Counted from the stretch's first letter, positions 13,930 through 58,164 are shown. The stretch: DNA of 64,000 nucleotides from Hyphochytrium catenoides (GCA_900088475.1 FLMG01003815.1:68205-132204), one strand, 5' to 3'. The notes: generated from the sequence alone by a model not told the origin. A program made the numbers and translations.

Positions 13930-16350
13930 ATGTCACAAGGAGGTCAGTTCTACACACCAACAGTGCACCTCAATTACGAAGGATGGGGCCCAACTACCCT
14001 CCCTGAGCAGTATATCGATGTTCCGTATGCACCGTTCGGGAAGGGCGACAGGCTAGGGAAGGCTGCAGACTTCACCTCAGGACACTCGTATGGCAGATAT
14101 AGAAGTAAGATTGTGGGACTAGTTCTGTGAGTTTATCCATGGTCCTAAAGCTTGACCCTGTCTACAGCCTATCAGCGCGGACGTGGCGGAGAGCCAGATG
14201 TGAATGCTGAGCTGCAGTACAGATTCGACGTCGCTGAGGATCTAGCATTCCAGCTGGTTGATACCTCTAAGCCTCACAGACCGCGTATTGTCGGACGGAA
14301 GCCATGGCAGCAGCGAGGCCGGAAGGATCAATTCCAGGGTCGCAACCGCAGACTCCAGCCTGCCGGGGCCCTTGGAAAGCGTCAGCAGGGCAAATACGAC
14401 AAGCTCCGGAAGGGACGTTTTGGAAACCGTCGTCGCGACGACAGGAAGGTGGACAGAGCGGCATCTGTCAAGGTGCAAGCAGACTGGAAGGTCATTGACC
14501 AGTTTGAGCTGCCGCAGCTGCTAAAGCTGCAGGCCAACGACCCGGATGCAGAGGACATGTGAGTGTACCACTATCAACATATTTGCTTGTGTTTTCTCTC
14601 CGCTTCCCGCTCGCGCTTTCAGGCGTTTGTGACAATGCTAAATGGGCAAGTGCTTATCCACGCGAGCGAAGAGTAATATTGGGCCACACTTTACACTCCG
14701 TTGCTTTCATGATTGGCTGAGTGTCATTACAGTCCACACATTCCTATGTCATCTTACTATCCCTTCCTCCCTCTTAACTCCCAAATGCCTAATAACGGCT
14801 CTATTGTCTCATTCCTTGACTTGTCTTTTCGTTGCTCCCCCCTCCCCCAACACAGCAAGTGGTGCGGCTACCTTGAGCAGTATGATGACAGTTATGACCG
14901 ACTGTCTGCGAGAACAGAGCGACCTCTTGAGAGGATTGAAAATCGTGAGTTCTACTGTGTCACGACAACCGATGATCCTCAGATTGAGGAGCTGGCAACC
15001 AAGGGAATAGGAAACGTCTTTGCGACGGATGCTATTTTGGCGCACCTCATGGTTTCTCCCCGATCCGTTTACCCATGGGACATAGTTGTTCAAAGAGTGG
15101 GAGACACACTCTTCTTTGACAAGAGGGACAACTCTCAATTTGACTTCCTTACAGTCAACGAAACCGCTACCGAAACTCCTCCTGCCGATGATCCTGAGTC
15201 TATCAACCACCCAGACAAGCTGAGCCTTGAGGCCACGGCCATTAATCAGAACTTCTCTCAGCAAATCCTTCTCTCTTCGGGAGAAAAGAAGGTTTACGAT
15301 GGTCCCAATCCCTTCTACGATGAGGAGGTTGACGAGGTGGAGCCTGCAGCTGTGGCATACCGCTATCGCAAGTGGGATCTTGGCAGTGGCATCAAGCTAG
15401 TATCTCGATGTGAGCTCCACGGTGTCACACAGAAGCGTGGTGTTGAGAATCTCTTCACCGCTTATGCTCTAAACGAGTGGGACTCAAAGCTATCTGGTAA
15501 CGATGACTGGAGAAAGAAGATTGACGCTCAGGTAAATAGCTTATTAATGGGCCAGGAACGGGATGTGTTGGTTAAGGTCGGAAGTCCGTATGATCGTATG
15601 AATATATACGCTATGCATAGCCTTTGTGATGATATCGTGATGAAAATAGCTGACGGACAGCGGCCATCAATGGCGGCCATCGTAGTGACTTTCCAGACTT
15701 GCTTACCTCTTATTCTAACTCGTTGTCATTCGCCGTCTACAAATACAGAGAGGTGCTGTGTTGGCAACTGAGTTGAAGAATAACTCGAACAAGCTTGCTA
15801 AGTGGACAGCTCAGAGCATACTGGCCGAAGCTGATCAAATGCTCATCGGGTTCGTCTCACGGAGATCGCCAGGCGACGCTTTCAACCATTCAGTTATTGG
15901 CACACAAATGTACAAACCCAGAGATTTTGCTCAGCAGATTAACCTCAGTTTTAATAATATGTGGGGCATCATCAAGGTAAGGTTCACAATGGGGCGAATA
16001 GGAGCAACCTTTGGCTCTTTCCTTTTGAGCCGTCGTCTTTCTGCGTCCATTACTTGGTGCCCTTCCCTCTCTTCCCGTCTTTGTATCCGGTTGCCGCACT
16101 TGCCGGTTGCCGCACTTGCCTGGTCTTCCTCGTGATTTCGTTGGGGTTCGATCGCTCATTTGAGAGAGACCTGGTATCCCCGGGCTAACATGTTGTTTGC
16201 CTCCAGATGCTTTGTGAGAGGTTCATGGAGCTCCCTGAAGGGAAGTACGTCATCATGAGAGACCCCAACAAGCCAGTTGTGAGAATTTATTCCGTGCCGC
16301 CAAATACCTTTGAAGACGAGGATGAGGAGAGCGATGAAGAGGAAGAATAG
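13930..16350 (+). CDS. EIF3D: Eukaryotic translation initiation factor 3 subunit D; exons 13930-14104, 14168-14558, 14856-15531, 15749-15976, 16207-16350
   Basis: GWGP...[18 protein letters not shown]; SVKVQADW; [12 protein letters not shown]; [11 protein letters not shown]; LTVNETA; YRYRKWDLG; ALNEWDSK; [28 protein letters not shown]; [20 protein letters not shown]; acidic tail. Confidence 0.97.
14604..14743 (+). ncRNA. Intronic box H/ACA snoRNA (eIF3d intron 2)
   Basis: Hairpin 1 (cgctcgcg/cgcgagcg, upper stem aggcgtttgt/gcaagtgctt), H box AGAGTA at 14670-14675, hairpin 2 (tgggc/gtcca, upper stem acactc/gagtgt), ACA at 14738-14740 plus 3 nt. Upper stems end 13-14 nt before the H and ACA boxes. 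Confidence 0.75.
15584..15658 (+). ncRNA. Candidate intronic box C/D snoRNA (eIF3d intron 3)
   Basis: Terminal stem gtccg/cggac, imperfect box C (ATGATCG), internal GTGATGA, box D CTGA at 15650-15653, and 11 nt (atatacgctat) complementary to conserved 18S rRNA AUAGCGUAUAU. Confidence 0.35.
16087..16120. repeat. 16-bp tandem duplication in eIF3d intron 4
   Basis: ccggttgccgcacttg x2, then cc. Confidence 0.9.
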
Positions 16351-16952
16351 TCACAAAGCTGTCGTAAGGAGCTGCAGAACCATTGTGGCGTTAGAGTTAA
16401 GCTTCACAGTGGAGCGTATAAAGAGATTGGCGTTAAAAACATGAGTTCCCACGTAGTTGATGTGCAAGCTCAACCTCGGTTAAGCAGCAGCATGAGTTAC
16501 AAATAATCCCTTTTTAGAACATCTGCCTTTCGAATGCTCGATGGCACCACGTGGTTCTTCGGCTTCGATTTGCACGAGCCAGTCCTTCTAAATGCGTTGT
16601 CCCCGTCACTGTTTGGTCCTGACATTTGCTCACGAGCTCTAGATGGCCGTACTGCCATTTCGCATCTATGCTAATGTCTTACTACGTTTTTAGAAAGAAA
16701 CAAGGTATCACAACGCACGGCCTCATAACTGCGCCCCCTACTAATAGCAGACGTGAGACTTTCAATGAGGTGAGAAGCGTTCAATCCCATTCCGGGGACA
16801 AAGAATGACCCATGGGCATGCTTGGAGCTACGTGCTAGGAGTAAAAATAGCGGCTATATTTCCTGATTGCTTATAAGTCCTTATGTACTCGCCAAATTAT
16901 ATCTTCACACTTGAAGGTGATCCCTTCCCCAATGTTTGAACCTGCATACGCT

Positions 16953-17717
16953 TTAACCCTTCTTCTGGAGAGTGGCAGAGAGCCAGTCCAGACCCTCATA
17001 AAGTCCATCACCCGTCGTAGCGCAGCATGCCTGGATGAACCACTGGCGCTGTCTCAGACCATGGAGGCCAAGCTTGTCAGTCATTTCGGCTGCGCTCATT
17101 GCATTTGGCAGATCCTGCTTGTTGGCAAATACTAGTAGAATGGCTTCCCGAAGTTCGTCCTCGTTCAGCATGCGGTGAAGCTCATCACGAGCTGCAAAAA
17201 GCACCATAAGATCAGGGGCTCATATCTATACAATCACCAACAACAGGGGCACGGCTTACCAGCATCGATACGATCTCTATCATTGGAGTCTACCACGAAA
17301 ATCAGTCCCTGTGTGTTCTGATAGTAGTGTCTCCAGAGAGGTCTGATCTTGTCCTGTCCCCCAACGTCCCACACGGTGAAGCTAATGTTCTTGTACTCTA
17401 CAGTCTCAACGTTGAATCCTAAGGAAGAAGAAAAGAAGTAAGACTCTAGCCCCAAACAGGAGACCTAGGGAGATTGACATCATCAGTTTGGCCACCAATA
17501 GATCCAATAACTTGAAATGACAACTTGTTCTGATAAGCCACGGTACTATCGAGCTAGATAGGCACATACCAATGGTAGGAATCGTGGTGACAACCTCGCC
17601 CAGCTTCAGCTTATACAAGATCGTGGTCTTTCCTGCAGCATCCAGCCCCACCATAAGGATACGCATCTCTTTCTTCCCAAACATGCGCTCCCATATTCTT
17701 GAGAATGTAAGACCCAT
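16953..17717 (-). CDS. ARF1: ADP-ribosylation factor 1 (class I ARF GTPase); exons 17717-17570, 17418-17260, 17191-16953
   Basis: MG myristoylation start; GLDAAGKT; [39 protein letters not shown]; NKQD; CAT. Confidence 0.98.
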
Positions 17718-19819
17718 GGTTCCAATGTAAATAGCTCACTCTCCCTGTCGAGGAGTGTGACGGCACTTTCAATGGCTTAGGGGTTTATGCAGAGACTGGG
17801 CAAAGCTTTGCTTGTACCCAAGGCAATGAAATGGCAATGCCGGCTGCACACAGAAGGCACCAAGTCTTCGGTTGGGGCAGAGCGGCGGCAGAGCAGTCGG
17901 AGAAGTTGCGGAGAGCGTCACTGCCGCAAAAGCTTAACGTTGACAATAATAACTGGCTGCCGCGACGTTAGGCCTAGATTTCCTATTGGATCTTAGCGTA
18001 GTAAGAAGCAGAGTTCCGTCCAATCTGCCGGCTATGAGCCTCTAACACACCATCCACAGGGCCAGGAAAGGGAAGGGGGGAGGCACGAGTGTTAGGCTTC
18101 AAAATGGTGGTTCGAGGTTGTTAGGCGGACGGGGGGATTTGAGATGTGAGTGTGTTTAGGGAGCTTTTGGAGTGTGGTGTGAGAGACGTATGATCTCTAG
18201 GGCCAGCACCTAGTGAGTAATCTAAGATACACTCCTAGGAAGACAGAGAGAGTGGAGAGAGGAAGGGAGAGAAAATTTTTGGAATTGACAGGTACAGAGT
18301 GAGAGAGAGAGTGAGAAGAAATGTTGTTCCCTTCGCCCAAGAGCTGAAAATGTACGATAGTTCACGGAAAGGCTGAGACAGAGTGTATGGCAAGGGGTCT
18401 AACAGCTGTCCAAAGGGTGGAAGAGAATCAGCGAGGTAGCCAGGATGTGGAAGAGGTTCAGACAGAGTGGCGGTGTGGGAGACAGAACAGGACAGAGAAG
18501 TTGAAGGGGAGCTGCATGTTGCCCAAAACTAACAAGAAAGGGCCCCAACACAGAAACAGAGGAGTTCCACCGCTGTGATAGTCTAACACGTGGAAGTAGT
18601 AATACCAACGGCCTTAACACTAACCCTTACCCTACACAATAATAGTTCTTTTTTTCTTATCCACAGTTGGCTCAAGAATTGAGAAACTTTCCGGGTCCCC
18701 TATCCTCACCTTTGAGACGTCACACACCTCAGTCACTGCCGCTATGATCTGAGACAGTGGATCAGGGGGAGCGCCTCATACCTAGCCGGCGAACTCTGCG
18801 TATCCTCACAAAGAAAGAACCATTTTAAAAGTCCGGAATGGGTTACGTCTCACCACCCTTTCTAAAGTACAGTCCTAGGTGAAGCTCTAATAAATAAGTC
18901 TCCCATTCCGAAATAAAACTGAGCAGCGCGACTGCTCAAGATGTGCTCTCACTTCGCGTGGCTGCTTATGATTGGCTCTTCGTTTCGTGCTTGTCTCTGG
19001 TGCGCCGGCACTCATAGAACTGCGTGCTTCTTTACAATCATAGTCTCACTGTCTTCTTCAGAGTCCGGAGCTTTGTCACCATGACCGTTGAGTCCGTCAC
19101 ATATGCTCATGCCGATGAGTAGCTATCGTACAGCGCTGAATATGAGCGCTATTGGTTACCGCAGATGATTGCCATGAGTGCGGGACGTGCTCCATCTGTT
19201 TTTATGCAGACCCTCAGCGCAACTATGATCTCTTAAGTTGGAGTGCATCAGAGCTCCGAGAATATATTGACACAAAATGCGTCGGAGCTTTCTCATAGGT
19301 GTAGTTCACTTCTGCATCTTGTGACATGGATTGTCAGGACCGCGACATTACTTTTTTATTTTTTTATTGACGGCTGTATGGGTGGTGAGGCCTCCAGTGA
19401 GGTCACATTGACTTGCTCCATTGGGAAGCCCTGTCCCTTGCCCTCGCCCTTGTCTGCCCCTGCCCCTGTTCTAGGGGGCAGTGGTGATGGGATTGAGTCG
19501 TTTGCGTCCCGTATCTAATATCTCTTCTCTCCACCTATCGCTCCTTTCCGTCTTTTTGTCGTTTGAGCCTTTTACTAGTAGGACATGATGTTTTCTAGGG
19601 CTTCCCTTACCGATATTCCAATGTACGTCAAAAATTCTTCCGGGAGATCCTGCGCTGTGGAGGATCGTTGTTTTATCTCCTCAGCTTGGTGCTTCAGCTG
19701 TTATTGTGGGTCGGTCAGGAAGAGAAACGGCTCTGGTTGCTGCTTTGTTGTGGTGGTCATCGCGACCTTATAATATTTGGCGATCTCACCGGACGATGAA
19801 GAGGAGCTTGTGGTTATTA

Positions 19820-31312: not shown

Positions 31313-34300
31313 ATGAGTTTGTTTGCGGCGGCAGGAGAACGTCCCACTTCTAAGGCCACTGCCGGGAATGAGGTTCAGGAGGGGGCCAGAAAAGCCACAA
31401 GCTTCCGTCTAACGAGAGAACAGCTGGAAGCTATCCAAAGAAGACAGGTTAGTGGACTCTTTCAAGACGCTATTTCACCAATCATTCCATGCTGATCCCG
31501 CTCCGAACAGGACGCGTCCTCGTCCTCTTCTGACAGTAGCGACAATGACAGCGGACGGGCCTATAATGATAATGAGGACAGAAAAAGAGCTAAGGATCAG
31601 GCGCACCTGACGCAGCAAAGGCGCAAGGAGAAGAGAAGGGAGAAGAAAAAGAAGAAGGAGAAGAAGAATGAGAAGAGAGAAAAGAAGGAGAAGAAGAAAA
31701 AGAGTAAGAAGAAATATGAGCAGGATCAGGACAAGCGTCAATCGGCGAAGACCGTTGACCCTAGGAAAGAAGATAAATCTAGAGACCACCAAGAACTGAC
31801 TCTGGCACTTCTAAGTGGCAGCCAAGAGCTGGCTGCTAAGAGAATGGGCGAGAGCCTCTCCTTGGTCGCCCGTAGTGACTCCACTCAACCCTTAGAGGGA
31901 GTTTTTGAAGAGGACAGGGGCTGTGACATGAAGAACTTAGCGTATGGCAGCCTCTACCGAATGAATGTCCCAGCCTACTACATCTCTCACGCGCCTCACC
32001 ACATCGTCGGCTTCAGAAGCTTGCCTGGGGCTCTGCGACGGGAGCTCGTGGCACAGGCAGTGGAAGGTCCAGCCAAAGCCTCAAATCAACCTCGTTACTA
32101 TGCGCCAGAACGTGTTATGGACTATGCGGACGAGACCCTCCGACGCTTAGATCTCTCAGCGAGCATGAAGAGAAAGCGGAGGCTAGAAGAACAAGAAAGT
32201 GCTACGGAGAACAAACGGGGAAAACCAGGAGAGTCCAAGATGTCCGATGAGAAGGAGGACCTGGGAAACCCCGCAGCTGGGGCCAGTCACCTTAACTTCA
32301 TTCCCCTGGATCCTTTTGTCGTTCCTGAAGCCCATCAGCCTGCCGAAGCTGAGCTAGGTCGCACTGCAGTGGACCAGGTGGTAGACAGGGAAATCTATGG
32401 CGTTAGCGACTTAGAAAAGAGAGAGGAGAGATTTCTGCAAAAGACGAAGGAGTTCAACGAGAAGCTAAGAGACAGGCCTTCAGAGGTGCAGCTGTGGTTA
32501 GACTTTGCTGCTTTCCAGCACGAGGCCTCATTTATGAGCGGAGCTAGAAAAGAGAACCGCAGAGGTAGGGAAGCTGTCCTTTTACGCTCTCCTTGGCAAC
32601 GTGCGCCATTCTAATTTTTACTTTAGGAATATTGGAGAAGCAAATCTCTATCTTGGACAAAGCGCTAGTGAAGAATCCACAGAATCTATCGCTTATCCTC
32701 GCCCGTCTCCTGCTCACATCTCAGCTTCACGAGTTCGAAGCGGTACAGGAGATATGGCGGAACTTTTGCCTCCGCCTTTCCTCTGTGGAAGGGCTCTGGG
32801 CAAGCTTTCTCAGTGCCAAGGCCAGGAGGTTCTCTTCTTTCTCTTTAACCATGATGAGGGAGGAGTATAGGGCAGCGTTAAGGATTATCACGGGGGAACG
32901 AAGAAAGCTGTTGGCGAAGGTTTGATCTGATTGCTGGAAACCTCCTCTCACTTGTTTCACTTCTCCCCTATGTTTGTACGTGGTCTTCTTTGCTCGTTAT
33001 CCCGATCCTACTGCTCGCTGACTGTACAGCTCGCCTGCTCCTACCTGCACTTCCCTTATCCCTTCTCGGGTCAGCCAGCTTATGTGGTCGTGCTCTTTGG
33101 TCTGCATTCAGGCAAAAGCTAACGGTGAAACGGTCATGGAATCAGACTCGCTTCTAGAGAAGAAGGAGACGATTTTAGAAGAAGCGCAGCTACTCATTTT
33201 CTTTCGGCTCTGCTACCTGGAGCAGCAAGCAGGTTACACGGAGAAAGGGACAGCATTACTCCAAGCTCTAGGAGAGTTCAACCTTGGTTATAAACTCTCG
33301 TCATCTCCCTCTGCCAGGCATTGGGTGGAGGTGGACTCCATGAGTCAAAAGCTCTCTGACTTCGAGGACTACTGGGAAAGTGAGGAGCCACGTCTTGGTG
33401 AAGAAGGTTCTCTAGACAGTAACTGGGCTACCTTTCAGGAGAGCAGGGGACACCCTAAAAAAGATGTCATTAAACCGAAGCACGAAGAAGACGCCTATCG
33501 CAAGAGTGCCTTGCAGGAAGCCTACAAGAAGGCTTCAACAACTCTACAGCCAGGCAGGGATTCATCATCTCTTGGCATGGCTAGCCACCTCGAAGCCTTG
33601 GAATCCGCAAGCGAACCATTTCCTTCCTTTGCGTCTCTGGAAAGCGCGCAACATCTCAAGCCGGGAACGGAGGTGGAACAGGATGTAACAAAAGGGGAAA
33701 AGACAGAGATAACCGCGACTCAACGTCTTATTCTTCGGGCGGAGGGTGCTCGACGCCCAAGAGCTGCTGACTTCTTTCAGGGAGACGGTAAGTCCACTCA
33801 TTGATACATTATCCTCTTCCTCCTTTCGGTCTTTTCTGTTTCCGTTGTGAAATAGGAAATACCAACAAATCTGCGGTATCCTACTCTCTTAGTGCGATAT
33901 GCTGTCTGCCAGCTAATAATCCGTCCCCTTTGCAGTGACGGATGAGGAAGAGGAAGACGAAGGGGATGAATATGTCTATAGTGTCGTGCATGGGTATCGT
34001 ATTCCAGTCAAGAAAGAGGAGGACACTACGGCCGAGTATAAAAGAATTCTCAGTCAGCTAAGAAAGGATGTGAAGCTGGAGGAAGAACTGAGGAAGAGGC
34101 AAGAGAAGAGGCGCGAAAGAGAGAAGATGGGCAAAAGGCGAGGACGGCGCTCGGATGCGCCCGAAGATATAGAGGCACGCTATCCGAGTCTCCCACTAGA
34201 TGATCCTATCCGCAGTTGGGCTCTTAATGAGCTGCGAAGAGAAGAACAGGAGTGGATGCCTCTAAAAGCATCCACGTTTGAGTACAAAGATGGCGAGAAA

Positions 34301-37241
34301 GAAGAGGAGGGAGGAGAGGCCAATTTAGCGGAGGAGGAGCCAGAACGGGTCATATTCTTTGACGATATCAGAGATTTCATTTTCCCTCTATCGCCACCAC
34401 TCCATTTCTGTCTGGCACATGGCTTCTTGGAGTATCTGGGCGTGTCTATCAATTTCACGCGCTTCGGATCCTCGTGCTCGCCATATCGCGCCGCTAAGAC
34501 TCAAGCTATGGAGGATCGATGGATGGGTGAAGGTACGGATGGCCAGGGATACTTTATCTTTGTGCTACTCAGTTCGTGGGCCTTCTGCGAGGTATCCAAC
34601 TTATTTCAAACGGTAATTTCTTTCTCTGTTGTCTCAACATTGGCCTACTGCCAAGTCTTCTATTTTTATCATTAACCTATTCCCTTACGACCTACACAGA
34701 ACTAACAACCCTGCGCTTGTGCTGCTCTCATATCATCACCTTATCCGCTATGCCCATATAGTGAATGACATGGATCTCCTGGTCGACCCGGTGGACTCTT
34801 TCTTCGATTCAAAGCCCTTCAGCGCTAATAATTCTCCACGGGAGGTGGTGACCCTCTTCGGATGCTTTGACGCTACGCTCCGGGTAGAGGAGAAAGCTTT
34901 ACGCGACCAATGGAGGATCCGGGCAATCAGGAACATTCTTTATCGATGTTTCTCTGCTTTTGAGGAGCATTCTCAGGGACCGCAAGAATCAAAGCCAAGA
35001 GGGAACAATGCCTCCCCCACTTCAATTTTTCAAGCAGCGCTCATTGCCTACGAAGGAGAGGTGGCAGCCTCTACGGCAAGAGTAGGACTTGTTGAGGGTC
35101 CGGCGACTGACGAAAGAGCACAGAAGGCTATGGAAAGATCTCGCGACGTTGCTAAGGCTCTCTTAAAAGCAACGGAGCGAAGTCGCTTTGACCTTAAGCT
35201 TTGGCTGGCTTACGCTGCCGTAGAGGCGAGATTCGGTATGTTGGGTTTGATTCTCTTTGGGGAGTCGCATGTCTTGTCTAGCTATCTATCTTCCTATCGA
35301 TAGACTGTGACGAGACACTTTTCGCTTTTATAACTCTGCCTTCTGCCTCTACCGCTACATGAGCAAAACCCGACGCTTCTAACTTATGTACTCAAGGGAA
35401 CGGTATAGAGAGCGAACGTGTGCTGGAGACCGCTCTCTCTTTTCTTCCTTCGTTGGAAGGGCATGCACAAGATGGCGTCGCTCGTACTGCTTGGAGCCTG
35501 GCCCGTTTGTTTCTCTGGACTGGGGCACTGAGTACTGCTGTGCGCACGGGCAACAAAGAGCAACATTTAAGCATACGTACGTAGCCTAAGCTGTAGATCC
35601 CACGAAGCCGTAGATCCCAGTTCTCCTACGTCACCTTCGATTCCATGTACCTCCTCACTTACTGCCACTAGACCGTCCATTTACCATCCTCTTCCCGGCA
35701 TTGCAGGCTCCAAGCACGGTACCGAGAAGTGGTTGGCCATTAACGCCCTTCTCGCACCTGTGGAGGGACAATATCGTATACCTGAAAAGACAATGGAGAA
35801 GGACGAGCTCTTATCTTCGCTGTCTTTACCTAGTCGCATGGAGAGAGCGAAGGAGTTATTCGAAGGCCACATCCACCGCACTTTCTCCTCCATGAGCAAG
35901 GACACAGAAGTTTACCATGACATCCATTCTTTTTGCTACCAAGTCGCCTGCTATTCACTTTTCCAGTACTTGACGAAAGGCTACCACGCAGCTCATGAGG
36001 TTAGCACCTTCCTATCTAACGCACTTCGCAGAATTCTGACTTGATTGCGATGTCTTATCTCTAGAGTTTCACTTTACATAATCGTCTTACCCTCGCTGTC
36101 GACCGTTCTTTTGCCCTTTAGGTGTTTAGGATCAACAACGATAAATTGCAGGGTCTATTTTCAAGACGTGAGGATAAAGCACGGTCACCCCTGAACAGAC
36201 ACGAACAGTCGCAGGAGTGGCTGCTCACGGCGTGGCTAGAGCTACTGGCACACCATCGTCGCGAAGAAAGAGAAGCTGACAAGGGGTTGCAACCCCGTGT
36301 GATCGAGGATCTTGGTCATCGAGAGAGCTCACTCACCCTTCTCCGACAAGCATTAGGCATAGCGTTGGACAGATTTCCATCTTCACCGTTGTTCCTTCGA
36401 CTGTTCGCCGACACGGAGAGAGACTTTCGGGCTGCTCGACGGCTCCAGACACATTTTCAGCGGATACTTCGTCGGTCACTCCTCTCGACTGGGCCTACGG
36501 CTCCACAATGGCTGTTTGCACTCTACACGGAGGTATCTAGAGCTTTTGCAGAGCTTCGGCAGCAGGCACTTTCAAAATCTATGAATCCCGAAAGACACTA
36601 TGACGACATGGGCCAAGGGGATGGTCCTCTTGCTAATGTATGGGAGTTAAATGCGGCTGCTATTCAGCGCATCCGCCGACTATTCGAAACAGGCGTTGAT
36701 AGCTTTGACGGCCAAGGCAAGTGCATTGATGACATTACGAATTGGGTTTGGGTCAGAACGCGGCTCCGCCGTTCATCTAACGGCCCTTATATTCCTTACT
36801 TGAAGTCGACCTCTATTCCTATTATCTGTCCTCAATCTTTGCCATAAGTCCTTACTGACATGAGATCTCAACTGAAACCTCATCGCTACGAAAGCAACGC
36901 TTAGTGTGAGTAAGTCTCAACTGAAACCTCATCGCTACGAAAGCAACGCTTAGTGTGAGTAAGTCTTCCCCTCTGACCCTTTTTCGCTCCTCCACCCTTC
37001 TCCCTCAGCTCTGGTGCTTTTCTGGAGGCTGTATGTCAAGTTCGAGCTCAGCGTTCGACGGCCCTCCCGGGCTAAGTCAATCTTTTTCAGGGCGGTACAC
37101 CGTTGTCCCTGGAGCAAAAGACTGTGGATAGATGGCCTTACTGCACTCAGAAGGTTTATGACGGAGGCAGAATTGAAGGATATAGCTGACCTTATGCTGG
37201 CCAAGGAGATTTACCATCGGCAAGCACCCTTGGAGCTCTAA
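31313..37241 (+). CDS. NRDE2: NRDE-2 family HAT-repeat protein (nuclear RNAi / MTR4 partner), multi-exon
   Basis: K-rich N-terminus; DRGCDMKNLAYGSLYRMNVPAY; TKEFNEKLRDRPSEVQLWLDFAAFQ; EKQISILDKAL; QQAGYTEKGTALLQALGEFN; FEDYWESEEPRLGEEG; EPERVIFFDDI; FFRAVHRCPWSKRLW. Confidence 0.9.
36866..36963. repeat. Perfect 49-bp tandem duplication in the last NRDE2 intron
   Basis: tctcaactgaaacctcatcgctacgaaagcaacgcttagtgtgagtaag at 36866-36914 and 36915-36963. Confidence 0.95.
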
Positions 37242-47020: not shown

Positions 47021-50000
47021 TCAAGCCATGAAGAGACCGAGAAGGAGAGAAGAAAGAAGGAAAGAGAGAATATATACTGACAATGAGGCAGGGACCACAA
47101 AGAACGCAGCGCTGACGTCTACCCGGGTCTTCATGCCAGCCTCCAGATGATCAGCGACGTCACACTTCAGCACATAAGAAGCTGCAGGAGTCTCAGGAGC
47201 AGTCAGAACGTCCACAGTGGTGGAGGTGCCTGGTAGAAGCTCAACAGTCGTAGACTTTCTCTGCCTTCCTTGCCCGAGCACAATGCCTGGCATGTTCGGG
47301 GTGTGAAGGCCGTTCTCTGTTCCTACAGAGAGTAGATGCCACCGGCTGATTTGGTTGTTCTTCTGCACTTCGATAGTGGGCATGGTGCAGTAAAGGAAGC
47401 CATTGATGTTGTGCTTCTGGTTACTTTCTAGAAAGTCTTCCTCGTTCTTGAGAACCGTCAACCTGTTGGCTCTCTCCTCAGAGCTTTCCAGTCTGTTCCT
47501 CTTCTCTCTATACTTTCTGAAGAAAGAACGGTCCAGATACTTCTCCATATTATAGTCGAGGTATGGACTGATGTTCTCATCAAAGACGCTGAAAAGAAGG
47601 ACATGCTCAGCTTCGATACCAGCAGGGAATGGCTTAGTGGCATCATTGTCCTTCAGCTGATCGGCACGGGTGACGACAATCGGCCCCATCAATCCTGCCG
47701 ATGTGGACACGACGGTGTCTACAGGTGATTGATAGAGGAAAGCAGCAGAAGACAAGTCCGCCTCTCCAAGAGCAGCAGTCTCGGGACTAGCATACCATGT
47801 GAAGGTTGCCTTTTCGTTAGGCTTCACAGCGAGAGAAGGATCGGAGGAAGACAGCACAGAGCCATCTTCAGCGAGGACCTGTAGGGCACTGGGGAAAATT
47901 CCGGCCTCTGATTCCTCAAGTAGGTTCTTGAAGACAACCTTCACCTTCTGACCCACAGCCACGCGGACAATGGGACCTAAAATGCCAAGATACTTCTCGT
48001 CTCCCGTTCTCTTCGTCCTTTTGGTGAAGTCTTCATCCTCATACTGCCGGTAAACCGCCTTCTTGTATAGCGAACCAATCGTCACATCTGTCCGCACGGT
48101 GTACAGGGCAGCCTTCTCGTTGTCTTCAAGCTTCTCCAGTGTGCAACCATCGAGCCCCCTGCCAGGCGTGTAGTCGTGCTGAATCTCTTCCGCGGCAATG
48201 AAGTAGGTCAGCACAGGAAGGTCAGCGGTTGCAGCTAAGGCCTTAGCAGCTGGTGCCTCCGTCTTGCTGTCAGAAGCTGGGGTGGACCCGTTACCTTCGG
48301 AGATGACAACTGGGGCAATCATCCCGCCTAGATTGTGGTCCTGCACCTGACAAGACAGAGAGAGATTGCCTGGTTTCTGGGGACCCATCTCAACGTTGAG
48401 CATGGATGAAGCCATCAGCGCCACGGTGCTAACTCTTTTTCCTGAAGCTATCACCGTGCGGCCATCCCAATGGGGTGTGTGCACGTCCACCTCGTTACCC
48501 AGAGAGACCAAATGCCAGAGAGACCGCTCAGACGAAGACAGAGCAAAGCTAGGACCAGAACAAAAGAGATAGCCATTGATAGCGTGCTTCAGCATGCTCT
48601 CTGCGAAGAGAGGAGACGCCATGAGACCCTGCATGGCATCAATGCCTCGGTAGCCTGACAGGTGCTTCTGCACATTCTCTGTAGCATAACTGCTGGCTAC
48701 CTCATCCAACACGGTGAAGAATGCGAAGAACTCCTTCTCATACCCCTTGGGCTTCAGATCCTCAGTAGCTCGCTTGGGGTCTACGACAGCAATAAGGCCA
48801 ACTAGACCGGAATTTGTATCGGCGATCTCATCCACGTGAGAGTGATAGAGCCATACAATGGAGGCAGGGTCATTGGGACCAGGACCTGCATAAAGCGGAG
48901 GTAAGAAGGTGTATATAAGGCGCCCAAGAGGCACGCAATCAAGACTGTGCGTTGAATAGAATAGGAAATAGAGAGTGTCGTATCCTCTCACCAGCTCTCT
49001 CAGGGACCTCCCAGCGGTAAATGTGCGTCTTGTTTGGCGATACGATGCCGTCCCATCCCGCTGGATTGTAATGGGCTCCCTCATGTGTCTTGTTATAGAA
49101 GACACCGTGCGGGTGCATGCTGTGCATAGGCAAAAGTCGTGAGTGAGCTTTATCTAAAAGGAGTAGTAGAGTGAGAAAGCATGGTACCTTGCATTGCGGT
49201 TCAAATTGTTCCTGAAGTGAACGACAAGCGTGTCTCCCACAGCGGCTCTTAGAAGTGGACCGAGTAGTCCCATGTGCTCCTCATCTTTTGTCCTTTCTTT
49301 TCTTTCCTTGAAGTCTGGCCCAGTGTACTCTACAAAGAGGGCCTTTGTATACACGCTGCCCAGAGCATAGGCACCTGGACTCACAAATATTGCCTCTTCA
49401 GGAAGGAACTCCTCTCCAGTACAAGGGTTGATCTTCTTGTCTTCGCTAGGGAGATAGTCCCATTCTACTTCTTCTGCTGCTACAAAGTACTCGCGCTCCT
49501 TTCCAGTGAGCGCAGGAAGGGCTTTCTTGTCCTTCGATTCTTCCACAGTGTAGAGCGCCATCATGCCCGCCTTCAAATGGTCGTTCACGTGGCAATGATA
49601 TAACCAAGTACCAGGAGTGTCCACAGTCATGTCAGCGGTCCACACGGATCCAGCAATCAGTTCGTGCTCGTCCTTCCTCTCTCCAGAAATAAGAGCCGTG
49701 TTGGCGTGCCAATGAGGAGTATGAAGGTCAGTCTCTGAACCCACAGAAGCGACATACCAGCGGACACGTTGACCGTTGACCGTCTTCAGATCCGGCACAT
49801 TGCAGTAGAGATAACCGTTGATCGTGTGCTTCAGGTTACTCTCTTGAAAATCTCCATCATCAGCCAGAGCTTTAAGGTCCGACATAGCAGGGATCAGGGG
49901 CTGCAGTCCTGGCTCCAGAGGAGAGGCGTTGCTCTGAACTCTTCTAACGTTAAGGTCGAATAGAGGAGAGCTGTTCTCGTCCTGGATAAGGAAGAGCGTG

Positions 50001-50842
50001 ACAAACTCTACGTCAACGTCCCTGGGTGTCCCATCTGGGTTAGCCATGCCTTTCTTTGTGACAATGATGGGTCCTACAAGCCCAAGATTGGTCCATTGAG
50101 CTAGTCTGCGAGCCGGTCGGTAGAGCCACATCATCGAGGAAGCACTAGATTCTCCAGATGGGGCAGCGATGCTGTCTGCTCTCCAAAGGTATCGTGCCTT
50201 ATCGCCAGATTTTACGGAGCGAGGGACTGCGAGTTCTTGAGCGTCTTTACCAGAAGTGATGGGTGTGAGTCCCATTGGTTTGATGCTCACACGCTCTCTA
50301 GCCTTGTTTTTGAAGATAATCTCTGCCGTGTCGCCCTCCTCAAGATGAATAACGGGACCTACGATGAAGCATAATACCAACAGAGGAGGCGTCCAGGAAA
50401 GCGACAAAGCGTTAGTCATGAACGAGCTCCACACTGATCAGTTCACCTATAGCAGGGAGAAGAACAAGGGCAGGTCATAGCTTGGCTTACCTACGAGCCC
50501 AAGATGTCTCCACTGTGGAGGCTGCTCTACCATGGTCTCGAAGGAATCATCGGTAAAAGCGCGATAGACGATCTTGGTATAGACTGACCCGATACGAAGA
50601 CCAGGAGCGGGAGAGACGAAAAGATCTTCTTCGGGAGAGAGCGGTGCATTCTTGCACATATTACGCTTTTCAGGTGCATAGTCCCAGTCCAGCTCTACTG
50701 CTCCTATGTAGAATGTCCTAGTCTGCTGCGCTTCTACCAGGAGAGTCGGGGAGGGCAACAGAGGAAGATGAAGAGCCAAGAAGCCCGTGATGAGCAGCAG
50801 CAGCTCTGCCCCACAGCCCCATCGGCGAGAGGAAAGCGCCAT
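47021..50842 (-). CDS. Six-cupredoxin-domain multicopper oxidase (ceruloplasmin/hephaestin/FOX1-like ferroxidase) with a signal peptide and C-terminal hydrophobic anchor; exons approx. 50842-50491, 50358-49188, 49119-48992, 48885-47021
   Basis: Three repeats of (Y/F)xAxExxxDYxP...GSxYxK...G(L/I)xGP paired with KHxINGxLxC. Copper motifs HTPHWH, HCHVNDHLKAGM, MHPHG, WLYHSH, CQVQDHNLGGM and CDVADHLEAGM. Confidence 0.95.
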
Positions 50843-51086
50843 AGTTTTTCTACTCACACTCTTTCTCTCACACTTCCTTGTTGATCTAGCCGCTGTATGG
50901 CGCGACCCTTGTTGGCGCAGGAGAGGGGAAGTTAGAGAAATGAGGGGGAGGAGGAAGGTGCGCCTACTTCCTGTCGTGGTTCGACTTCTGCTCATGCCAT
51001 GCTTTGCAGAGCTTACTCTAAACAGGTAGTCGAGCGGGCCAGGAGAGTGGAGCTGGAGGGGAAGGGCTAATTGTCAAAGAACAAGA

Positions 51087-51160
51087 GGGGGAGAGACGAA
51101 AGGAGAGAGGAGAGAGGAGCGGAGAGAGAAGAGCAGAGAGAGAAGAGAGGAGAGAGAGAG
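51087..51160 (-). repeat. GA-rich tract (CT on the oxidase sense strand) upstream of the multicopper oxidase
   Basis: Purine-rich agagag/ggagag runs. Confidence 0.85.
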
Positions 51161-51383
51161 GCTGATTCGAAGAAGAAATGGGGAGATTGACGTATTGCCA
51201 AAGAAAGTGAAGGTGGAGGTGCTACCAAGATCCTTACTATATAACCACCGTCCTTGCTTATCATGGAGGAAAGAGACGAAGGTGGGACCTTTGGCTGGCC
51301 TGCATGCCATCCTCCTCTTCCCCTGTTGCCCTTTCAGGTTCCCTGCCGACTTCCTCTCCCAGCGCTGCCTTTCTTTCTCTCTC

Positions 51384-51476
51384 NNNNNNNNNNNNNNNNN
51401 NNNNNNNNNNNNNNNNNNNNNNNNNNNNNNNNNNNNNNNNNNNNNNNNNNNNNNNNNNNNNNNNNNNNNNNNNNNN
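51384..51476. other. Assembly gap flanked by CT repeats
   Basis: Run of n with tctc on both sides, probably an unresolved microsatellite. Confidence 0.95.
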
Positions 51477-52454
51477 TCTCTCTCGCCCCGATGTCGAGAT
51501 GATGACATGACAGCCAAAACCTACACCTGGCACGCCCATCCATCACGGATCTTGGGGCTTGAGCTTGATGCTATCTCCCTTGTAAAAGACAATATATCTC
51601 TTCACTCACATACAGCTTGATCTGTCTCGTAGATATGTCTGCAGATGGCCTTAGCTTAACACTGCGGTTGTCCCAACCTTGAGCTTCTCTCTCACCTTCA
51701 TTCTTCTCAATGTCTCTACGCTCTGTCTTGTATCAGGCGTGGCCTCTGTCTGTCTAGGTTTAGACGATGACTCAGATCCGGGAACTACAAAGTTCCAAGC
51801 AATAAATGCGGGAGCCATTTGTTCTAGATTCGCCATTTTGGCGTGGAAAACAAAGGACCCTGCCCTCTCCATTCCAGGTGACGCCCTCCATGAAGCGCAC
51901 CGCACATGGGAACAACACCACATCCGCCGTCATAATAGCCCTGACAATTACCTCCGTCGTTCCTAAAATGTCTTGTTTTTGCGCTGTAGAACCGGGAACT
52001 TGGATGTTCACCTGTTCTAAATCGAAGGAAGTTGAAGGCAAGAATCAGGAGGAGGAAGTCAGATGAAAAGCTGTCGTGGAAGGGTTGCTAACCAATCATC
52101 TCGGTTTGCACCGTCCTTACAAGGAAATCCCAAGTTCTAAAATGCTCCGCTCCCGCACTTCTAAAGGAATGTGATGATAGGACTCCGCGCCTATAATGCA
52201 CAGGGACATCATCGATTTAGAACTCCTATTTTAACAGCGCTAGTCATTTCCTAAATTTATTCTGGGAGATGTATTGTATGGCCTGAGTAATTCTCAGGGT
52301 GGCGCGGGATTTTGGGTTAGGTTGGAAAGTGGGAGGGGAACTAGGAAGTTCTGGGGTCCTTTCACCTCTTTTGCCTCGCCTTTTATATTATTACTTTCGG
52401 CGTCCGCCATCGCTTTTTCGAAGGTTTGGTCATGTTCCCTAAGAAGATGGCGGC

Positions 52455-52455
<1 letters not shown>

Positions 52456-52489
<34 letters not shown>

Positions 52490-52593
52490 CAGAGAGACAT
52501 CTTGTGTCTCCTCGTATCTTGTGTGCAGGTGGAGGGACTGTGATAGTGACCAGCGGGCAAGGGTTTGGAGACAATTGAAGAAAACAGAAAAAA

Positions 52594-52628
<35 letters not shown>

Positions 52629-52781
52629 AAGAAAGAAAGAGAAGGGGAAAGTGTGGTTAAAGCAAAGCTCTTGTAGCGAGAGTCAATCAGAGAGAGGAGA
52701 GGTAAGCAGCGGTGCTGTCTGGTGCTATTATTCGGAGGGGATACAGAGAGGAAGAGAAGCGAGAGAGGGGGAGGAGGGAGG

Positions 52782-52824
<43 letters not shown>
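52456..52824 (+). repeat. Cluster of (GA)n microsatellites between the oxidase and ZIP genes
   Basis: (GA)n runs at about 52456-52497, 52593-52645 and 52786-52824. Confidence 0.95.
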
Positions 52825-52826
<2 letters not shown>

Positions 52827-53124
52827 CAGAAGCGGTACCTGACTGGTAATAAAGCCTCACGAAGACATGATGACGAGACTCTCCACCTGTTGAGCACCCT
52901 CTTTTGTTTCAACCACCATCATCGCTCACCCTCTCTCTCTTCCTTCCATCTGACCTTCCTTAGAGTCCTGCCTCCCGTGAGCAATTCCAAGCTCATTTCT
53001 CAATCTTCAGGCTGCGTCAATGCAAGCACCGAGGGGGAGAAGCCAATCTTGTTGCTTACCTCTCTTTGTCCCCTCCGAGCTTCATCGCCACTGTTGATCA
53101 TCTACCTCACACAAAGACAGCACG

Positions 53125-54048
53125 ATGGCGGAGGGACTAGCCTTTCAGATCACGTCTATCGTGGTCCTTTTTTTCATTGGCATCATAGGCACTTTGATCC
53201 CCCTCTTCTTCAACAAGAAGATCAGCATTCTGGCGTATCTCAACATCTTTGCCGCTGGTGTCTTCCTTGCCATTGGTCTTATGACCATTCTTCCTGAGGC
53301 TGCCGAGCATCTGGAGATTGCAAGTGAGCAAACCAAGGAGTTCCCGTGGGCTTACTTCCTTACCATCGTGGGATTCTTCATCATCTTCCTCACTGAAGAA
53401 GTGGCGCATGTGTACTATAGAAAGGCCTTCGGACGCTCTTCTCATGATGACCTGGAGAGCCCAGTACCTGGACAAACCGAGTTCGTGCAGTCTGCGGATG
53501 TGCGGATGTCAGAGAAGCGCGATGGACAGGTGGCTCCTATGACAAGTGAAGAGCATCACTCTCTCCTGGCTGCTATTGTGCTGCTTCTGGCGCTCTCCAT
53601 CCACGAGGTTCTGGAAGGTTTCTCTATTGGAGCCATGGAGAATGCATGGGGATTGCTGGTCGCCCTAATCTTCCATAAAACCGTAGAGAGTTTGGCGCTT
53701 GGTGCTGCTTTTGTTAGGGCCAACATCAACCGTAGAGCATTCTTCGCTATCATCTTCGTGTACTCTCTGATGCTGCCTTTGGGCATTGGGCTCGGTATCG
53801 CTAGTCAGCAGGAGGGTACCACCCTTACGGGTGTCCTTCTCGCTCTGTCCGCAGGCTCATTTCTCTACATCTCAACTGCGGAAATTATTCCAGAGGAGTT
53901 CCATATCAAGCACCAGAAGGACAGGGCTATCCGCTATCTGTTCCTTTTTGGTGGCACCGTGGTCATGTCCGTGATGATCTTGCTGGAGGAGATTGCTGAG
54001 CTTGCGACGGAGGATGAGGAGCTGCAAGGTACAGGAATGGAGTTCTAG
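53125..54048 (+). CDS. ZIP-family (Zrt/Irt-like) divalent metal transporter, intronless, 307 aa
   Basis: About 8 TM helices; NIFAAGVFLAIGLMTILPEA; variable loop with SSHDD/EEHHS; TM4 LSIHEVLEG; TM5 FHKTVESLALG; SAGSFLYISTAEIIPEEF. Confidence 0.95.
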   Translation: MAEGLAFQITSIVVLFFIGIIGTLIPLFFNKKISILAYLNIFAAGVFLAIGLMTILPEAAEHLEIASEQTKEFPWAYFLTIVGFFIIFLTEEVAHVYYRKAFGRSSHDDLESPVPGQTEFVQSADVRMSEKRDGQVAPMTSEEHHSLLAAIVLLLALSIHEVLEGFSIGAMENAWGLLVALIFHKTVESLALGAAFVRANINRRAFFAIIFVYSLMLPLGIGLGIASQQEGTTLTGVLLALSAGSFLYISTAEIIPEEFHIKHQKDRAIRYLFLFGGTVVMSVMILLEEIAELATEDEELQGTGMEF

Positions 54049-56540
54049 AACTCTTCCGTGATGAGGAAGGAAGGACTATGTATTGCCCTTTGTCAGGGCC
54101 TTCACTTTACTTTACGCTGCAGGGTCTGCAATGGTCCAGACCATTAATGAGTATGTTTGTAACAGCTAAATAACATATATTCCACCAAGAAACCTTGGGG
54201 ACTGAGCTCTTGATGCAGCTGTCCTAACAATTTGTTGCCTACGCGATGTCTCGCTCTCTTGAATTGATGATGTGCTAGCCCAGCTAGAGCTCACAAGCCA
54301 TTAATACTACGCTAATAATTGGCAACAAATAATATGTGTTAATGCAAGAAATCTTAGTCCATTCCCCGTCATCAGTGCCTCGTAAGACGACAGACAACGA
54401 CATACACTTATGAGAAGAGCTGAGAAGATTGACAACGACATGTAGACACCTGTATAAACTGAGAGTCTGATAAAGCATACTGACGGAGAAGTTGTTTTTA
54501 CCGAAAGAGTAAACAACACGTAGGGCAGAAACGACAACAAGAAGAGAGGTAAAAAGCATCCAAACCATTTCTTCTTCTCTCCTCTCACTCCATTTGACCT
54601 CTGACCGTGCCTGAGTATGCTCAACGTCTCTTGGCTTGAAGTAACCCAGATATGGCCACTTTTCTGAGGTATCCACTGGCCAAAGATGTTCAATCGGGGA
54701 AATCCTTCTCCTCCGCAGAAATGAGGAGACTTCCAGGAAGGTCAACTTTGACTTGGGGAGCACTTCATCCGATCTCCTATCTGCCAGATAGCATCATGGT
54801 GACTTATGAAACTGTTGCAAGCTGGTCTTCATAGCATCTTAAAACGTCATCAGAAAGAAGACTTCACCTATCCTTGGGGGTGCTTCCCCTCTAATGATCA
54901 AAGAGCAGAATCCCAATAGGGTTAGAGCCACCACCTTCGTAGAGAAAGCCTGAGAGTAGGTCTTATGGCACTTGGGATCAAAGCAAGAGCCACGCAGTAT
55001 CGGCTACTGACCGTACCAGGACAGAGTTGTTAGTGCCCAAAGTTTAGTTCTGCTGCAAGTAACGCGACGGACGCCATAGAAGAATGGCTAACGGCCAACA
55101 ACGTTTCGACACGGCTGGACCATGAAGTTTGGCATTGTGCGGTTTCTTCGGTTCCGAAAGTGGAGACTATGTCGACTCGCAGCATGTCGTCACGCCCCAA
55201 TAACCATGTGAAGAAGTTAAAAGTCACACGAAGGCATCAGGATGAGGGTAGTTGCCTCAAGCACAGGCAAAAGCATTGTCCATCACGCTGATCTCACTAC
55301 TCTTCCGTTGTCTGCAATATGCGCTACTGAAGGTAATAATGGAAAAGGTAATATCTTCCTGCGAAAGTCTGATCACTTCAAAAAGAGCCCAGCGAAAACA
55401 TCGCATGGGTTGAGGCTCGAGATAGCAGTGATACGATCCGCCTCACTTGGTTACTGTCACTTCGACAAAGGACTGCAGATCCACTGGGGAAGGATGGGCT
55501 CTGAAGAAGTCTACTACTCTGTGCAGGACATGGACCCTGGGCCACCACTTCTTCCCGGTCAAGGATCCGAACTTATGCCACGATCGTAGTGATGGGGACC
55601 CATCCTTGGGGACTGAAGACCGGAAACCATGACGCGATCGCCGGGAGGCCTTCTCTCCTGGGACAGCAACCTTGACAGGCTTTGGAGCCCTCGATTACTC
55701 CTGCCTGCAGCTTGGGGCGTCGCCCCCACCCCATTTCCAACTGGCTCTTCTTTTGAATGTTAAATCGTCCTCTTCATCTTCCACCCACACCACCAACCTT
55801 CCAGTCTAGACGACTGGAAGGTTCCTTGGTTGGCCAACAACAACCATTAATATCTATAGGTGGCTTGTCTCCTGCAGTCGCGCGACACTACGAATCATCT
55901 GCGGCAACACCGGTACAGCGCGCCTCTCCCCTTTAACCTAACACGACGGGTGCAGCAGGTAACAGTAACGGTAAAGTGTCCATGATGGGCTTCAGGTGTC
56001 AGATAGATAGAGACAGAGTTAGGAGGGCCCTGTGTTAATGGACGGGGACGGGGACTGCGATATATTCCTATCATCGGCCTAAGACCCGCTCGGCCAATCA
56101 CAGCTCATCCAGCAGCGAGACTGGTCAGTCAACACTGTTCGGACGTATTATGGATAAACAAACCGTTAATCCTCTGTAAATTGAATCAGCCTGATAATAC
56201 GGTCAGATTGAGGAAGCGCAATCCATCATTGAACTGGTCCAGTCCAAGAGTGTGGAGCTAGCTTGGGGGCAGCAACAGAGCACTATGCATCTTCATGGAA
56301 TGGAGAAGAAGATTGATAGCTCTTTCATTGAGCGAAGCCCATCAGCCCTACCTGGCCTCCTGAAGTGAGCTCTTTCTTTGTGGGCCCAGGGAGTGCCGCG
56401 TTAGTGGCGCTCTAGCATGCGCCTTTGGCTGTAATAACTCCCACCACGCTGGCGTTGAGTCAAGGCATACACCGTTATCTCCGGCATGGCAGAACAAGAG
56501 AGCAGGGTGATGGAGCAGGCCCATTGAGACGTAAACAGTC

Positions 56541-58164
56541 ATGTGGTCCTGGGTCTCTCAGCCTGCCAAAAAGCCTCGCGAACCAAAGCTAGCTACGGGC
56601 GACGAGGAACAGGTACACCTCCTCAGAGAGACGCTCCTTGACGAGGATCAGAGCGCGCCATCTGCGGCAAATGGGGTTCAACGGCCGACCAATACCTCAT
56701 GGTGCTCTCAGAATTTATCTCGAAGGTTCGGGAGCGCCCGGGACGACCTAAAGCTCCTGCCCATGCCGCTTATCATCCTCTATCTCCTGAACGGCCTATA
56801 CCAGTCATTCCCAATGACAGCCTATGGGTAAGTCCACATCGGGTGAGATCCGCCCATTGAGTGTTAACATCATTACTGCCTTTTGTCTTAGGTCTCTCCT
56901 CTTTGAAGATCTGAAGATGGACCCTGCAACGACAACTATCTTTTATGCAGTTACTTTTATTCCTTGGTACTGCAAGCCACTCTACGGCTGGCTATCTGAT
57001 AACTTTCCTATCTGTGGACTGAGACGAAGGCCATACATCATAATTTCTGAGCTTGTGGCGATGTGTATGTACGGAGTGACTGCACTATTTATTCATTCGG
57101 TCCCTGGGATCTATGCAGTTACAATGCTGCGGGCTACTGCCAACGCCTTTTCAGAGCTGATGCTTGGTGCCATCCTGGCTGACATCGTGAGCCATAGCAG
57201 GGAGAAAGCGGGAGCGGTCCAAGCCGTTGCCAGTAGCGCGAGGGCCTTCTCAAGCATTATCGCGTTTTCGTTGGGCATTCCAGTGTACAGCCATAACGTG
57301 AGCCCTAGGCTCATAATTCTTCTTACAGCTACGGGGCCCCTTGCGGCCGCCTTTACGGCACTCTGGCTAGAAGATTACCCTGTGATGAAGGTACGCAGCG
57401 ACCAAGGGAACAGAGTACGGGCTACAGCTTTATCCAGACAATGGACTGTCTGGAAGCCTATCGTACTGCCACTTCTTTTCCTCTTTCTCTACAATGCAAC
57501 TCCTACTGCCAGTTCAGCTTGGTTTCAGTACACATATAGTCTCTTCAAAGATGACAAAGCGTGCCTACAATACTCGCTTCTTGTCTCGTCCCTTGCCAAA
57601 TTTTTGGCTTGCATGGCGTACGGTATTGGTTGCACGCAGCGGCCCATACACTGGGTTTTTGTCACTACCACGGTGCTCGCCTGTCTGGCGACTCTCCCCG
57701 AATTGCTCCTGGTGCCACCGGTTCGCGATCTGGGTCTAGGAGTCTGTCTCCTAAATACACTGGAAACCTTTATATCATCATTTGCTGGGGAGCTAGCTTT
57801 TCTGCCTCTGCTGGTGCTTGCAACAGCCAACTGTCCCTACGGCCGTGAAGGGCTGGCCTACTCCATCTATCTCTCTGTAATAAATCTGGGGGATGTGGTC
57901 AGCGGGCTACTCTCAGCTCCTCTTATTAAAGCATTAGGCATTCAGACAGATGGTAGTGGGCAACAACACTGGGAACATTTAGGAGCACTCATTGTTATCT
58001 GCGTGGCCTGCCAAGTTCTGGTTCTGCTGTTCATTCCACTCTGTGGGATCAACAAAAGTATCCAGCTCTTAGGACCTCAGTTTGACGCAGACAGTCTACC
58101 GATAGAAAGGAAAATTGGCCAGAAGAGCAAGGGAGCGAGCAACGGTGCTATCCTAAAGTGCTAG
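56541..58164 (+). CDS. Folate-biopterin transporter (BT1/FBT family, MFS); exons 56541-56827 and 56892-58164
   Basis: IPWYCKPLYGWLSDNFPICGLRRRPY; FLFLYNATPT; LAFLPLLVLATANCPYGREGLAYSIYLSVINLG; about 12 TMs. Confidence 0.93.

Follow-up and report, generated by a model that had tools for sequence, protein, structure and literature searches.

We analysed a 64,000-nt stretch of the Hyphochytrium catenoides genome (FLMG01003815.1:68205-132204; hereafter the window, with coordinates counted from its first letter), in which the gene for a FOX1-like copper ferroxidase and the gene for a ZIP metal transporter lie head-to-head, both being intact and transcribed in a sister taxon. An earlier reading of this DNA, made without any other data (hereafter, the sequence-only reading), had put the pair forward as a candidate metal-uptake module with a shared promoter, while conceding that the adjacency might be due to chance. 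It is this concession that we retain as the leading explanation: with a probability of roughly 60%, two intact and transcribed metal-homeostasis genes are neighbours here without mechanistic coupling, and do not form a single machine. For now, the pair represents an ordinary neighbourhood of two known kinds of genes, and a functional pairing between them lacks support.

Gene models and transcription

The oxidase gene is located on the minus strand, with its ATG at position 50842 and the end of its stop codon at 47021, while the ZIP open reading frame (ORF) occupies the plus strand from 53125 to 54048. The two start codons diverge across 2282 bp, exactly at the positions given by the sequence-only reading, which had put the distance at about 2.3 kb. 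It had also named the products correctly as a six-domain multicopper ferroxidase and a ZIP transporter, identities that can now be sharpened to a FOX1-type ferroxidase-like oxidase and a full-length ZIP. One correction concerns the oxidase, which is encoded not by one ORF but by four exons. The minus strand of the 47021-50842 region contains three long ORFs in different frames, and our splice model comprises 4 exons separated by three GT..AG introns (132, 68 and 106 nt), yielding a product of 1171 aa.

RNA evidence came from contigs of two RNA-like runs of related taxa (X4 and X5), of which X4 derives from organism B, a sister taxon with ~93–95% identity. An X4 contig of 3648 nt skips exactly the three oxidase introns and an X5 contig skips the second only; since the predicted introns are skipped in spliced RNA contigs of the sister taxon, the oxidase gene model is confirmed. 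The ZIP ORF is uninterrupted and consists of a single exon (307 aa), and X4 contigs span it without joints (53008-54120). Both genes are therefore transcribed in the same sister-taxon RNA library, with the transcript contigs extending into the spacer as far as 50900 on the oxidase side and 53008 on the ZIP side, where they represent the respective 5′ untranslated regions. The features of the locus are as follows.

50491..50842 (-): oxidase exon 1, with the start codon, the signal-peptide-like N-terminus and the start of domain 1 (translation and splice model, X4 spliced contig 50489-50900)
50359..50490 (-): oxidase intron 1, 132 nt, GT..AG; joint skipped in X4 record 17
49188..50358 (-): oxidase exon 2, with the remainder of domain 1, which is free of copper histidines, the whole of domain 2 and the start of domain 3; the domain 2 motifs HTPHWH and HCHVNDHLKAGM provide a type-1 site and half of the trinuclear cluster
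49120..49187 (-): oxidase intron 2, 68 nt, GT..AG; joint skipped in X4 and X5 contigs
48992..49119 (-): oxidase exon 3, with the HPHG motif of domain 3
48886..48991 (-): oxidase intron 3, 106 nt, GT..AG; joint skipped in X4 record 17
47021..48885 (-): oxidase exon 4, with the HSH motif of domain 3, domains 4-6 and the C-terminal hydrophobic tail (GPI-signal-like; GPI, glycosylphosphatidylinositol) up to the stop codon
50843..53124 (no strand): divergent spacer, 2282 bp, GA/CT-rich and polymorphic, no gene detected
51384..51476 (no strand): assembly gap, 93 N, within a (TC)n tract, no contig across
53125..54048 (+): ZIP gene, 307 aa, eight hydrophobic segments, HEVLEG in the fourth and HKTVES in the fifth transmembrane segment (Pfam, hydropathy, RNA contigs 53008-54120)

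Architecture and family of the oxidase

Among solved structures, the best relatives of the oxidase are ceruloplasmins (E 7e-131, over 585 residues), followed by factors V and VIII, and its Pfam matches are to Cu-oxidase_2 and Cu-oxidase_3. When its three two-domain units were aligned with the corresponding units of a primate ceruloplasmin and of Volvox FOX1, six cupredoxin domains became apparent, arranged as three tandem units that match one another as well as the units of both reference proteins. The copper motifs are distributed unevenly among these domains. Domain 1 carries no copper histidines (IKPMG, YRPAR), and domain 5 has no copper motif. Domain 2 possesses HTPHWH and HCHVNDHLKAGM, with the type-1 segment CHVNDHLKAGM, and domain 3 possesses MHPHG and YHSHV. 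Domains 4 (HTPHWD, CQVQDHNLGGM) and 6 (CDVADHLEAGM) retain a type-1 site alone, the latter being devoid of both HxH and HCH. Domains 2, 4 and 6 each possess the type-1 ligands (His, Cys, His, Met), together with the upstream HTP histidine, and the eight trinuclear-cluster histidines occur at HWH 333 and HCH 372 in domain 2 and at HPH 510 and HSH 565 in domain 3, with none in domains 1 and 6. Judged from these motifs, the single trinuclear cluster of the oxidase is built from domains 2 and 3. Such a cluster has been described for the FOX1 proteins of Chlamydomonas and Dunaliella and for bacterial MnxG-like proteins (PMC3600357); the layout itself is already known, and the oxidase is a further member of a known family.

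In ceruloplasmin, Fe(II) is bound by E935, H940, D1025 and E272 (PMC3738974), which map to an ES..KH motif, to the D preceding the type-1 His and to the E of a G.E.D.H motif. According to the alignment, the oxidase retains equivalents of this whole E/H/D/E set in its domains 2, 4 and 6. Along with the six-domain fold and these iron positions, the protein would share membrane tethering with ceruloplasmin and hephaestin, as known for GPI-ceruloplasmin or hephaestin. However, the ceruloplasmin cluster is formed by domains 1 and 6, whereas that of the oxidase is assigned to domains 2 and 3, domains 1 and 5 being without copper histidines, and in our tree the oxidase falls outside the ceruloplasmin-type clade.

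The resemblance to green-algal FOX1 (Chlamydomonas, Dunaliella and Volvox) extends to the six domains, the location of the cluster at domains 2 and 3 instead of 1 and 6, and the type-1 sites in domains 2, 4 and 6; with Volvox FOX1, the motif layout agrees column by column. Nevertheless, identity to the green-algal proteins is only ~35–39%, and the oxidase comes from a stramenopile instead of a green alga. In its domain 2, it keeps the full set of Fe(II) ligands, which is incomplete in domain 2 of Volvox FOX1, and the C-terminal hydrophobic tail sets the protein apart from green-algal FOX1 as well. Furthermore, FTR1, the known partner of green-algal FOX1, does not lie beside the oxidase gene.

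An exhaustive search returned 1684 matches to the oxidase, the best of them 38–43% identical. Among the 150 best representatives, the domain 2/3 layout and the ceruloplasmin layout are almost equally frequent (28 and 27, respectively). A quick maximum-likelihood analysis of 44 full-length proteins with IQ-TREE places the oxidase in a clade of 14 rows, 13 of which are of the domain 2/3 type, with a support of 98 in the SH-aLRT (Shimodaira–Hasegawa-like approximate likelihood ratio test). This FOX1-type clade includes proteins of Volvox, Dunaliella and Ostreobium, as well as one choanoflagellate protein.

The N-terminus of the oxidase is signal-peptide-like, and its C-terminus consists of ~20 hydrophobic residues preceded by small ones, with nothing beyond, a pattern that suggests a GPI signal or else a membrane anchor. 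The C-termini of several other FOX1-type proteins are of this kind as well. By inference, the protein would be a surface- or lumen-facing, membrane-tethered ferroxidase.

As a separate observation, in a six-domain oxidase of 1275 aa from Paulinella micropora (EukProt, our P0153), each even-numbered domain carries HCH, and domains 3 and 5 carry HPH/HSH. The histidine set of a trinuclear cluster is complete both at domains 2/3 and at domains 4/5, and domains 6/1 have 7 of the 8 histidines. According to a survey from 2013, no cluster at domains 4/5 had been described (PMC3600357).

The ZIP transporter

The ZIP protein matches the Pfam Zip model (PF02535) almost from end to end (E 1.8e-54; residues 7-284, model positions 3-322 of 323). 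Eight hydrophobic segments are present, and the loop linking transmembrane segments (TM) 3 and 4 is short and poor in histidines rather than His-rich. The metal motifs are HEVLEG in TM4 (residues 160-165) and HKTVES in TM5 (residues 184-189). In human ZIP2, the metal ligands are His-175 and Glu-179 in TM4 and His-202 in TM5, and Lys-203 occupies the position that a second metal has in the bacterial structure (PMC6527156). Since the H..E and H-K pattern of the window's ZIP matches that of human ZIP2, the protein probably has one metal site. The likeness applies to human ZIP1-3 in general (ZIP-II, SLC39A1-3), which are likewise short proteins with eight TM, H..E in TM4 and H-K in TM5, the lysine replacing the second metal site.

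Among named Atlas clusters, those of eukaryotic plasma-membrane ZIP and of the ZIP3 family are nearest. This assignment leans towards zinc as the substrate, but substrate specificity changes readily as ZIPs evolve, and the protein may instead carry iron or manganese. The most similar homologue shares only 46% identity, a sequence search against solved structures returned no significant match, and the exact sequence is not on record in public assemblies.

The divergent spacer

The spacer includes 93 N and five GA/AG arrays, among them those at 51090-51161, 52455-52497, 52586-52642 and 52745-52825. Homopurine/homopyrimidine runs of at least 20 nt make up 9.1% of its length, compared with 1.2% of the whole window. 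We searched it for any gene that might separate the oxidase from the ZIP. No tRNA was detected, no Rfam match came near the gathering score, and the three longest non-repeat ORFs had no match in Pfam. The MIR529- and MIR408-like Rfam matches at 52756-52967 were rejected as GA/CT hairpins, with scores far under gathering. No RNA contig lies between 50901 and 53007, contig absence alone being weak evidence.

Haplotype contigs from two DNA runs cover positions 51548-52445 of the spacer, where they are ~4% different and include indels of 1, 3 and 10 nt, whereas the coding parts are <1% different. Such indels argue against a coding region, which would not tolerate them. On the combined evidence of the tRNA, Rfam, ORF, RNA-contig and indel analyses, a protein gene within the spacer is unlikely. 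This agrees with the sequence-only reading, which had described a GA/CT-rich interval without a credible gene; no sign of a transcribed gene between the pair emerged from tRNA, Rfam, Pfam or RNA-contig data. Independently of this question, the presence of two haplotypes at 51548-52445 indicates that the organism is evidently heterozygous (diploid or mixed culture).

Linkage in relatives

An eIF3d exon of the window is 55–59% identical to ochrophyte and oomycete proteins and 82% identical to a fragment from Logan (SRR28521184), which by sequence places the organism among the stramenopiles, on a thinly sampled branch. It is because of this thin sampling that the protein collections hold no close relatives of either gene. 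Among relatives of the ZIP, a single one has genomic context (L001, 46% identity); it is flanked by a legume-lectin-like gene and a ribosomal protein gene, with no oxidase within 10 kb, and the ZIP itself is all that this contig has in common with the window. On the oxidase side, seven contigs (L002, L003, L006-L008, L010 and L011) represent six independent neighbourhoods, L006 and L008 being syntenic. None of the six has a ZIP or an FTR1 gene as a neighbour of the FOX1-type oxidase, and the contigs share only the oxidase with the window. In L006 and L008, the ORFs that immediately follow the oxidase were rejected as separate genes, as they represent its own last exon. Two partial matches of higher identity (P0233 and P0259) lie on contigs too short for context, and metagenome scans with the ZIP and with oxidase exon 4 found no relative in either case. 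Conserved synteny of the pair was thus not found in the single ZIP neighbourhood or in the six FOX1-type neighbourhoods, all of them from distant relatives.

A different transporter gene does recur beside these oxidases. In two of the six independent neighbourhoods, the FOX1-type oxidase gene is directly adjoined by a gene for an iron transporter of the VIT1/CCC1 family (PF01988). In one of them (L002:10001-14393), the two genes are convergent; in the other (L007:825-6750), they lie head-to-head at a distance of 540 bp. Identity between the two oxidases is only 38%. By analogy with ferroportin and hephaestin, this arrangement suggests that the oxidase–VIT1 pairs may combine an Fe2+ exporter with a ferroxidase. 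The recurrence of this adjacency in two distant protists may make a better story than the ZIP pair. In the window itself, no VIT1 gene was detected (tblastn with the L002 and L007 VIT1 proteins).

A relative closer to the window than these is represented by the Logan sample mentioned above. The order and exon structure of the eIF3d and Arf GTPase genes at 13927-17725 of the window are conserved in a contig of that sample (L009), at 73–86% nucleotide identity. This contig is only 5 kb long, and the ZIP and oxidase of this relative are not in the protein collection; the SRR28521184 sample is the best handle for synteny tests.

Two metal genes as probable neighbours without coupling

If the genes are uncoupled neighbours, the oxidase would be secreted and membrane-tethered, held by its GPI-signal-like or hydrophobic C-terminal tail, and would turn Fe2+ into Fe3+ on the outer or lumenal face of the membrane. 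The partner that accepts or releases the iron, either an FTR1-type permease or an Fe2+ exporter, would be encoded elsewhere. The known partners of such oxidases are indeed FTR1-type Fe3+ permeases or ferroportin-like Fe2+ exporters (PMC3600357, PMC11817551, PMC3738974). The ZIP1-3-like importer, with its putative single metal site, would move Zn2+ or another divalent cation into the cytosol without needing the oxidase. Moreover, because ZIPs carry divalent ions, a ferroxidase would deplete rather than supply their iron substrate (PMC11817551). The repeat-rich spacer of 2.1–2.3 kb would provide room for two separate promoters, and any link between the two genes may be loose co-regulation at most.

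Under our own assumptions of ~40 metal-transporter genes among ~12,000 genes and of 50–100 metal enzymes per genome, a given gene has a metal-transporter neighbour with a chance of ~0.7%. Because about half a chance pair per genome is then expected, one metal enzyme–transporter pair comes as no surprise. The layout does resemble the divergent Fet3–Ftr1 pair of fungi, in which a ferroxidase gene also stands head-to-head with a metal transporter gene. However, fungal Fet3 has three domains and FTR1 as its partner, whereas the oxidase of the window has six domains and a ZIP (PF02535) as its neighbour, and no paired REXLE motifs of the FTR1 type occur in any frame of the 64-kb window.

Several observations weigh against regarding the genes as mere neighbours. 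The comparison covered distant relatives, with identities of 46% for the ZIP and at most 38% for the oxidase, and these have no other synteny with the window, which makes the non-linkage weak evidence. Given that VIT1 adjoins two of the six FOX1-type oxidases, the linkage of an oxidase with a transporter is, as such, not rare. In addition, Chlamydomonas FOX1 and the ZIP-family proteins IRT1 and IRT2 belong to the same iron-deficiency response, and iron-responsive genes of diatoms can be adjacent.

Alternative explanations

It is possible, but in our assessment tentative, that the pair constitutes a co-regulated metal-starvation locus, with the spacer serving as a bidirectional control region. 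The oxidase would then belong to an Fe3+ route operating alongside direct import of divalent metal by the ZIP, without the proteins touching each other. The head-to-head orientation with no gene in between and the transcription of both genes in one sister-taxon library are consistent with such a locus. So are the precedents just mentioned, as the iron-uptake set of Chlamydomonas holds both FOX1 and IRT1/IRT2, and the stramenopile Phaeodactylum has an iron-induced ZIP, together with adjacent iron-responsive FRE2 and FBP1 genes. Nevertheless, the spacer is long, indel-polymorphic and filled with microsatellites, unlike a compact shared promoter, and the ZIP resembles the zinc-type ZIP1-3 group, lacking a His-rich loop. 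Moreover, the iron-responsive motifs CACGTG(Y)C of diatoms and CACACG/CACGCG of Chlamydomonas FOX1 are absent from the spacer, which is a weak test across lineages. Hence, while the divergent layout on which the sequence-only reading had based its module and shared promoter stands, the module itself finds no backing in any sampled relative, be it the ZIP neighbourhood or the six FOX1-type loci, nor in a known iron motif in the spacer. The module idea has come down to adjacency, and an oxidase–ZIP pairing would be new.

Rather doubtful is a farther-reaching proposal, in which a surface-tethered FOX1-type ferroxidase and a ZIP1-3-like importer would form an undescribed co-regulated unit, expressed from one divergent control region. 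Here, the oxidase would either shape the metal that is admitted or run a parallel Fe3+ route, and the pair would be an instance of a wider adjacency of genes for FOX1-type oxidases and divalent-metal transporters, as with VIT1 in two protist lineages. If the pair is such a unit, membrane ferroxidases would gain a third type of partner besides FTR1 permeases and ferroportin, and the locus would offer a way into studying metal uptake by heterotrophic stramenopiles. For now, it documents the FOX1-type oxidase layout in a stramenopile, with a verified gene model.

Quite improbable, in our view, is a scaffolding artefact, by which a contig with the oxidase (left of 51384) would have been misjoined to a contig with the ZIP (right of 51476) across a common (TC)n repeat. 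The gap at 51384-51476 lies inside the spacer and touches neither reading frame. Contigs of two DNA runs end at 51383 and 51477, with loose ends that continue TCTCTC on both sides, and the flanks of the gap in the window are also (TC)n on both sides. Most simply, the gap represents a single (TC)n microsatellite left unresolved in the assembly. As neither DNA run has a contig across it, the two genes are adjacent by virtue of the scaffold join, and their adjacency is not proven. A misjoin would also be favoured by the repeat in which both sides end, which is simple and very common, the spacer alone containing several arrays. Conversely, the same repeat unit at both flanks, continued by the loose ends, is what would be expected for one tract, and the gap estimate of the scaffolder is short and specific (93 nt).

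Direct coupling is very improbable. Here, the surface oxidase would control the ion that reaches the ZIP, for example by oxidising Fe2+, Mn2+ or Cu+ at the entrance to a promiscuous ZIP, and would thereby exclude the ion or hand it on. This proposal can draw on nothing but the adjacency, a matching topology (the oxidase would face the outside or lumen, the side from which ZIPs take up metal) and the VIT1 pairs in the same oxidase clade. By contrast, ZIPs move divalent ions, and what a ferroxidase produces is not among their substrates; such oxidases are known to partner with FTR1 or with ferroportin-like exporters; none of the sampled relatives showed conserved linkage; and no such pairing is described in the literature searched.

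Other genes in the window

Downstream of the ZIP gene, at a distance of 2.8 kb, the window encodes an intact ORF of the BT1 family (folate/biopterin transporter, major facilitator superfamily; 56824-58164, 446 aa). Between the two lies an ORF of 159 aa on the minus strand (54284-54763), which has no family match. Farther away, at 31844-34675, several plus-strand ORFs in succession have Pfam matches to NRDE-2 (necessary for RNA interference) and are probably exons of one gene.

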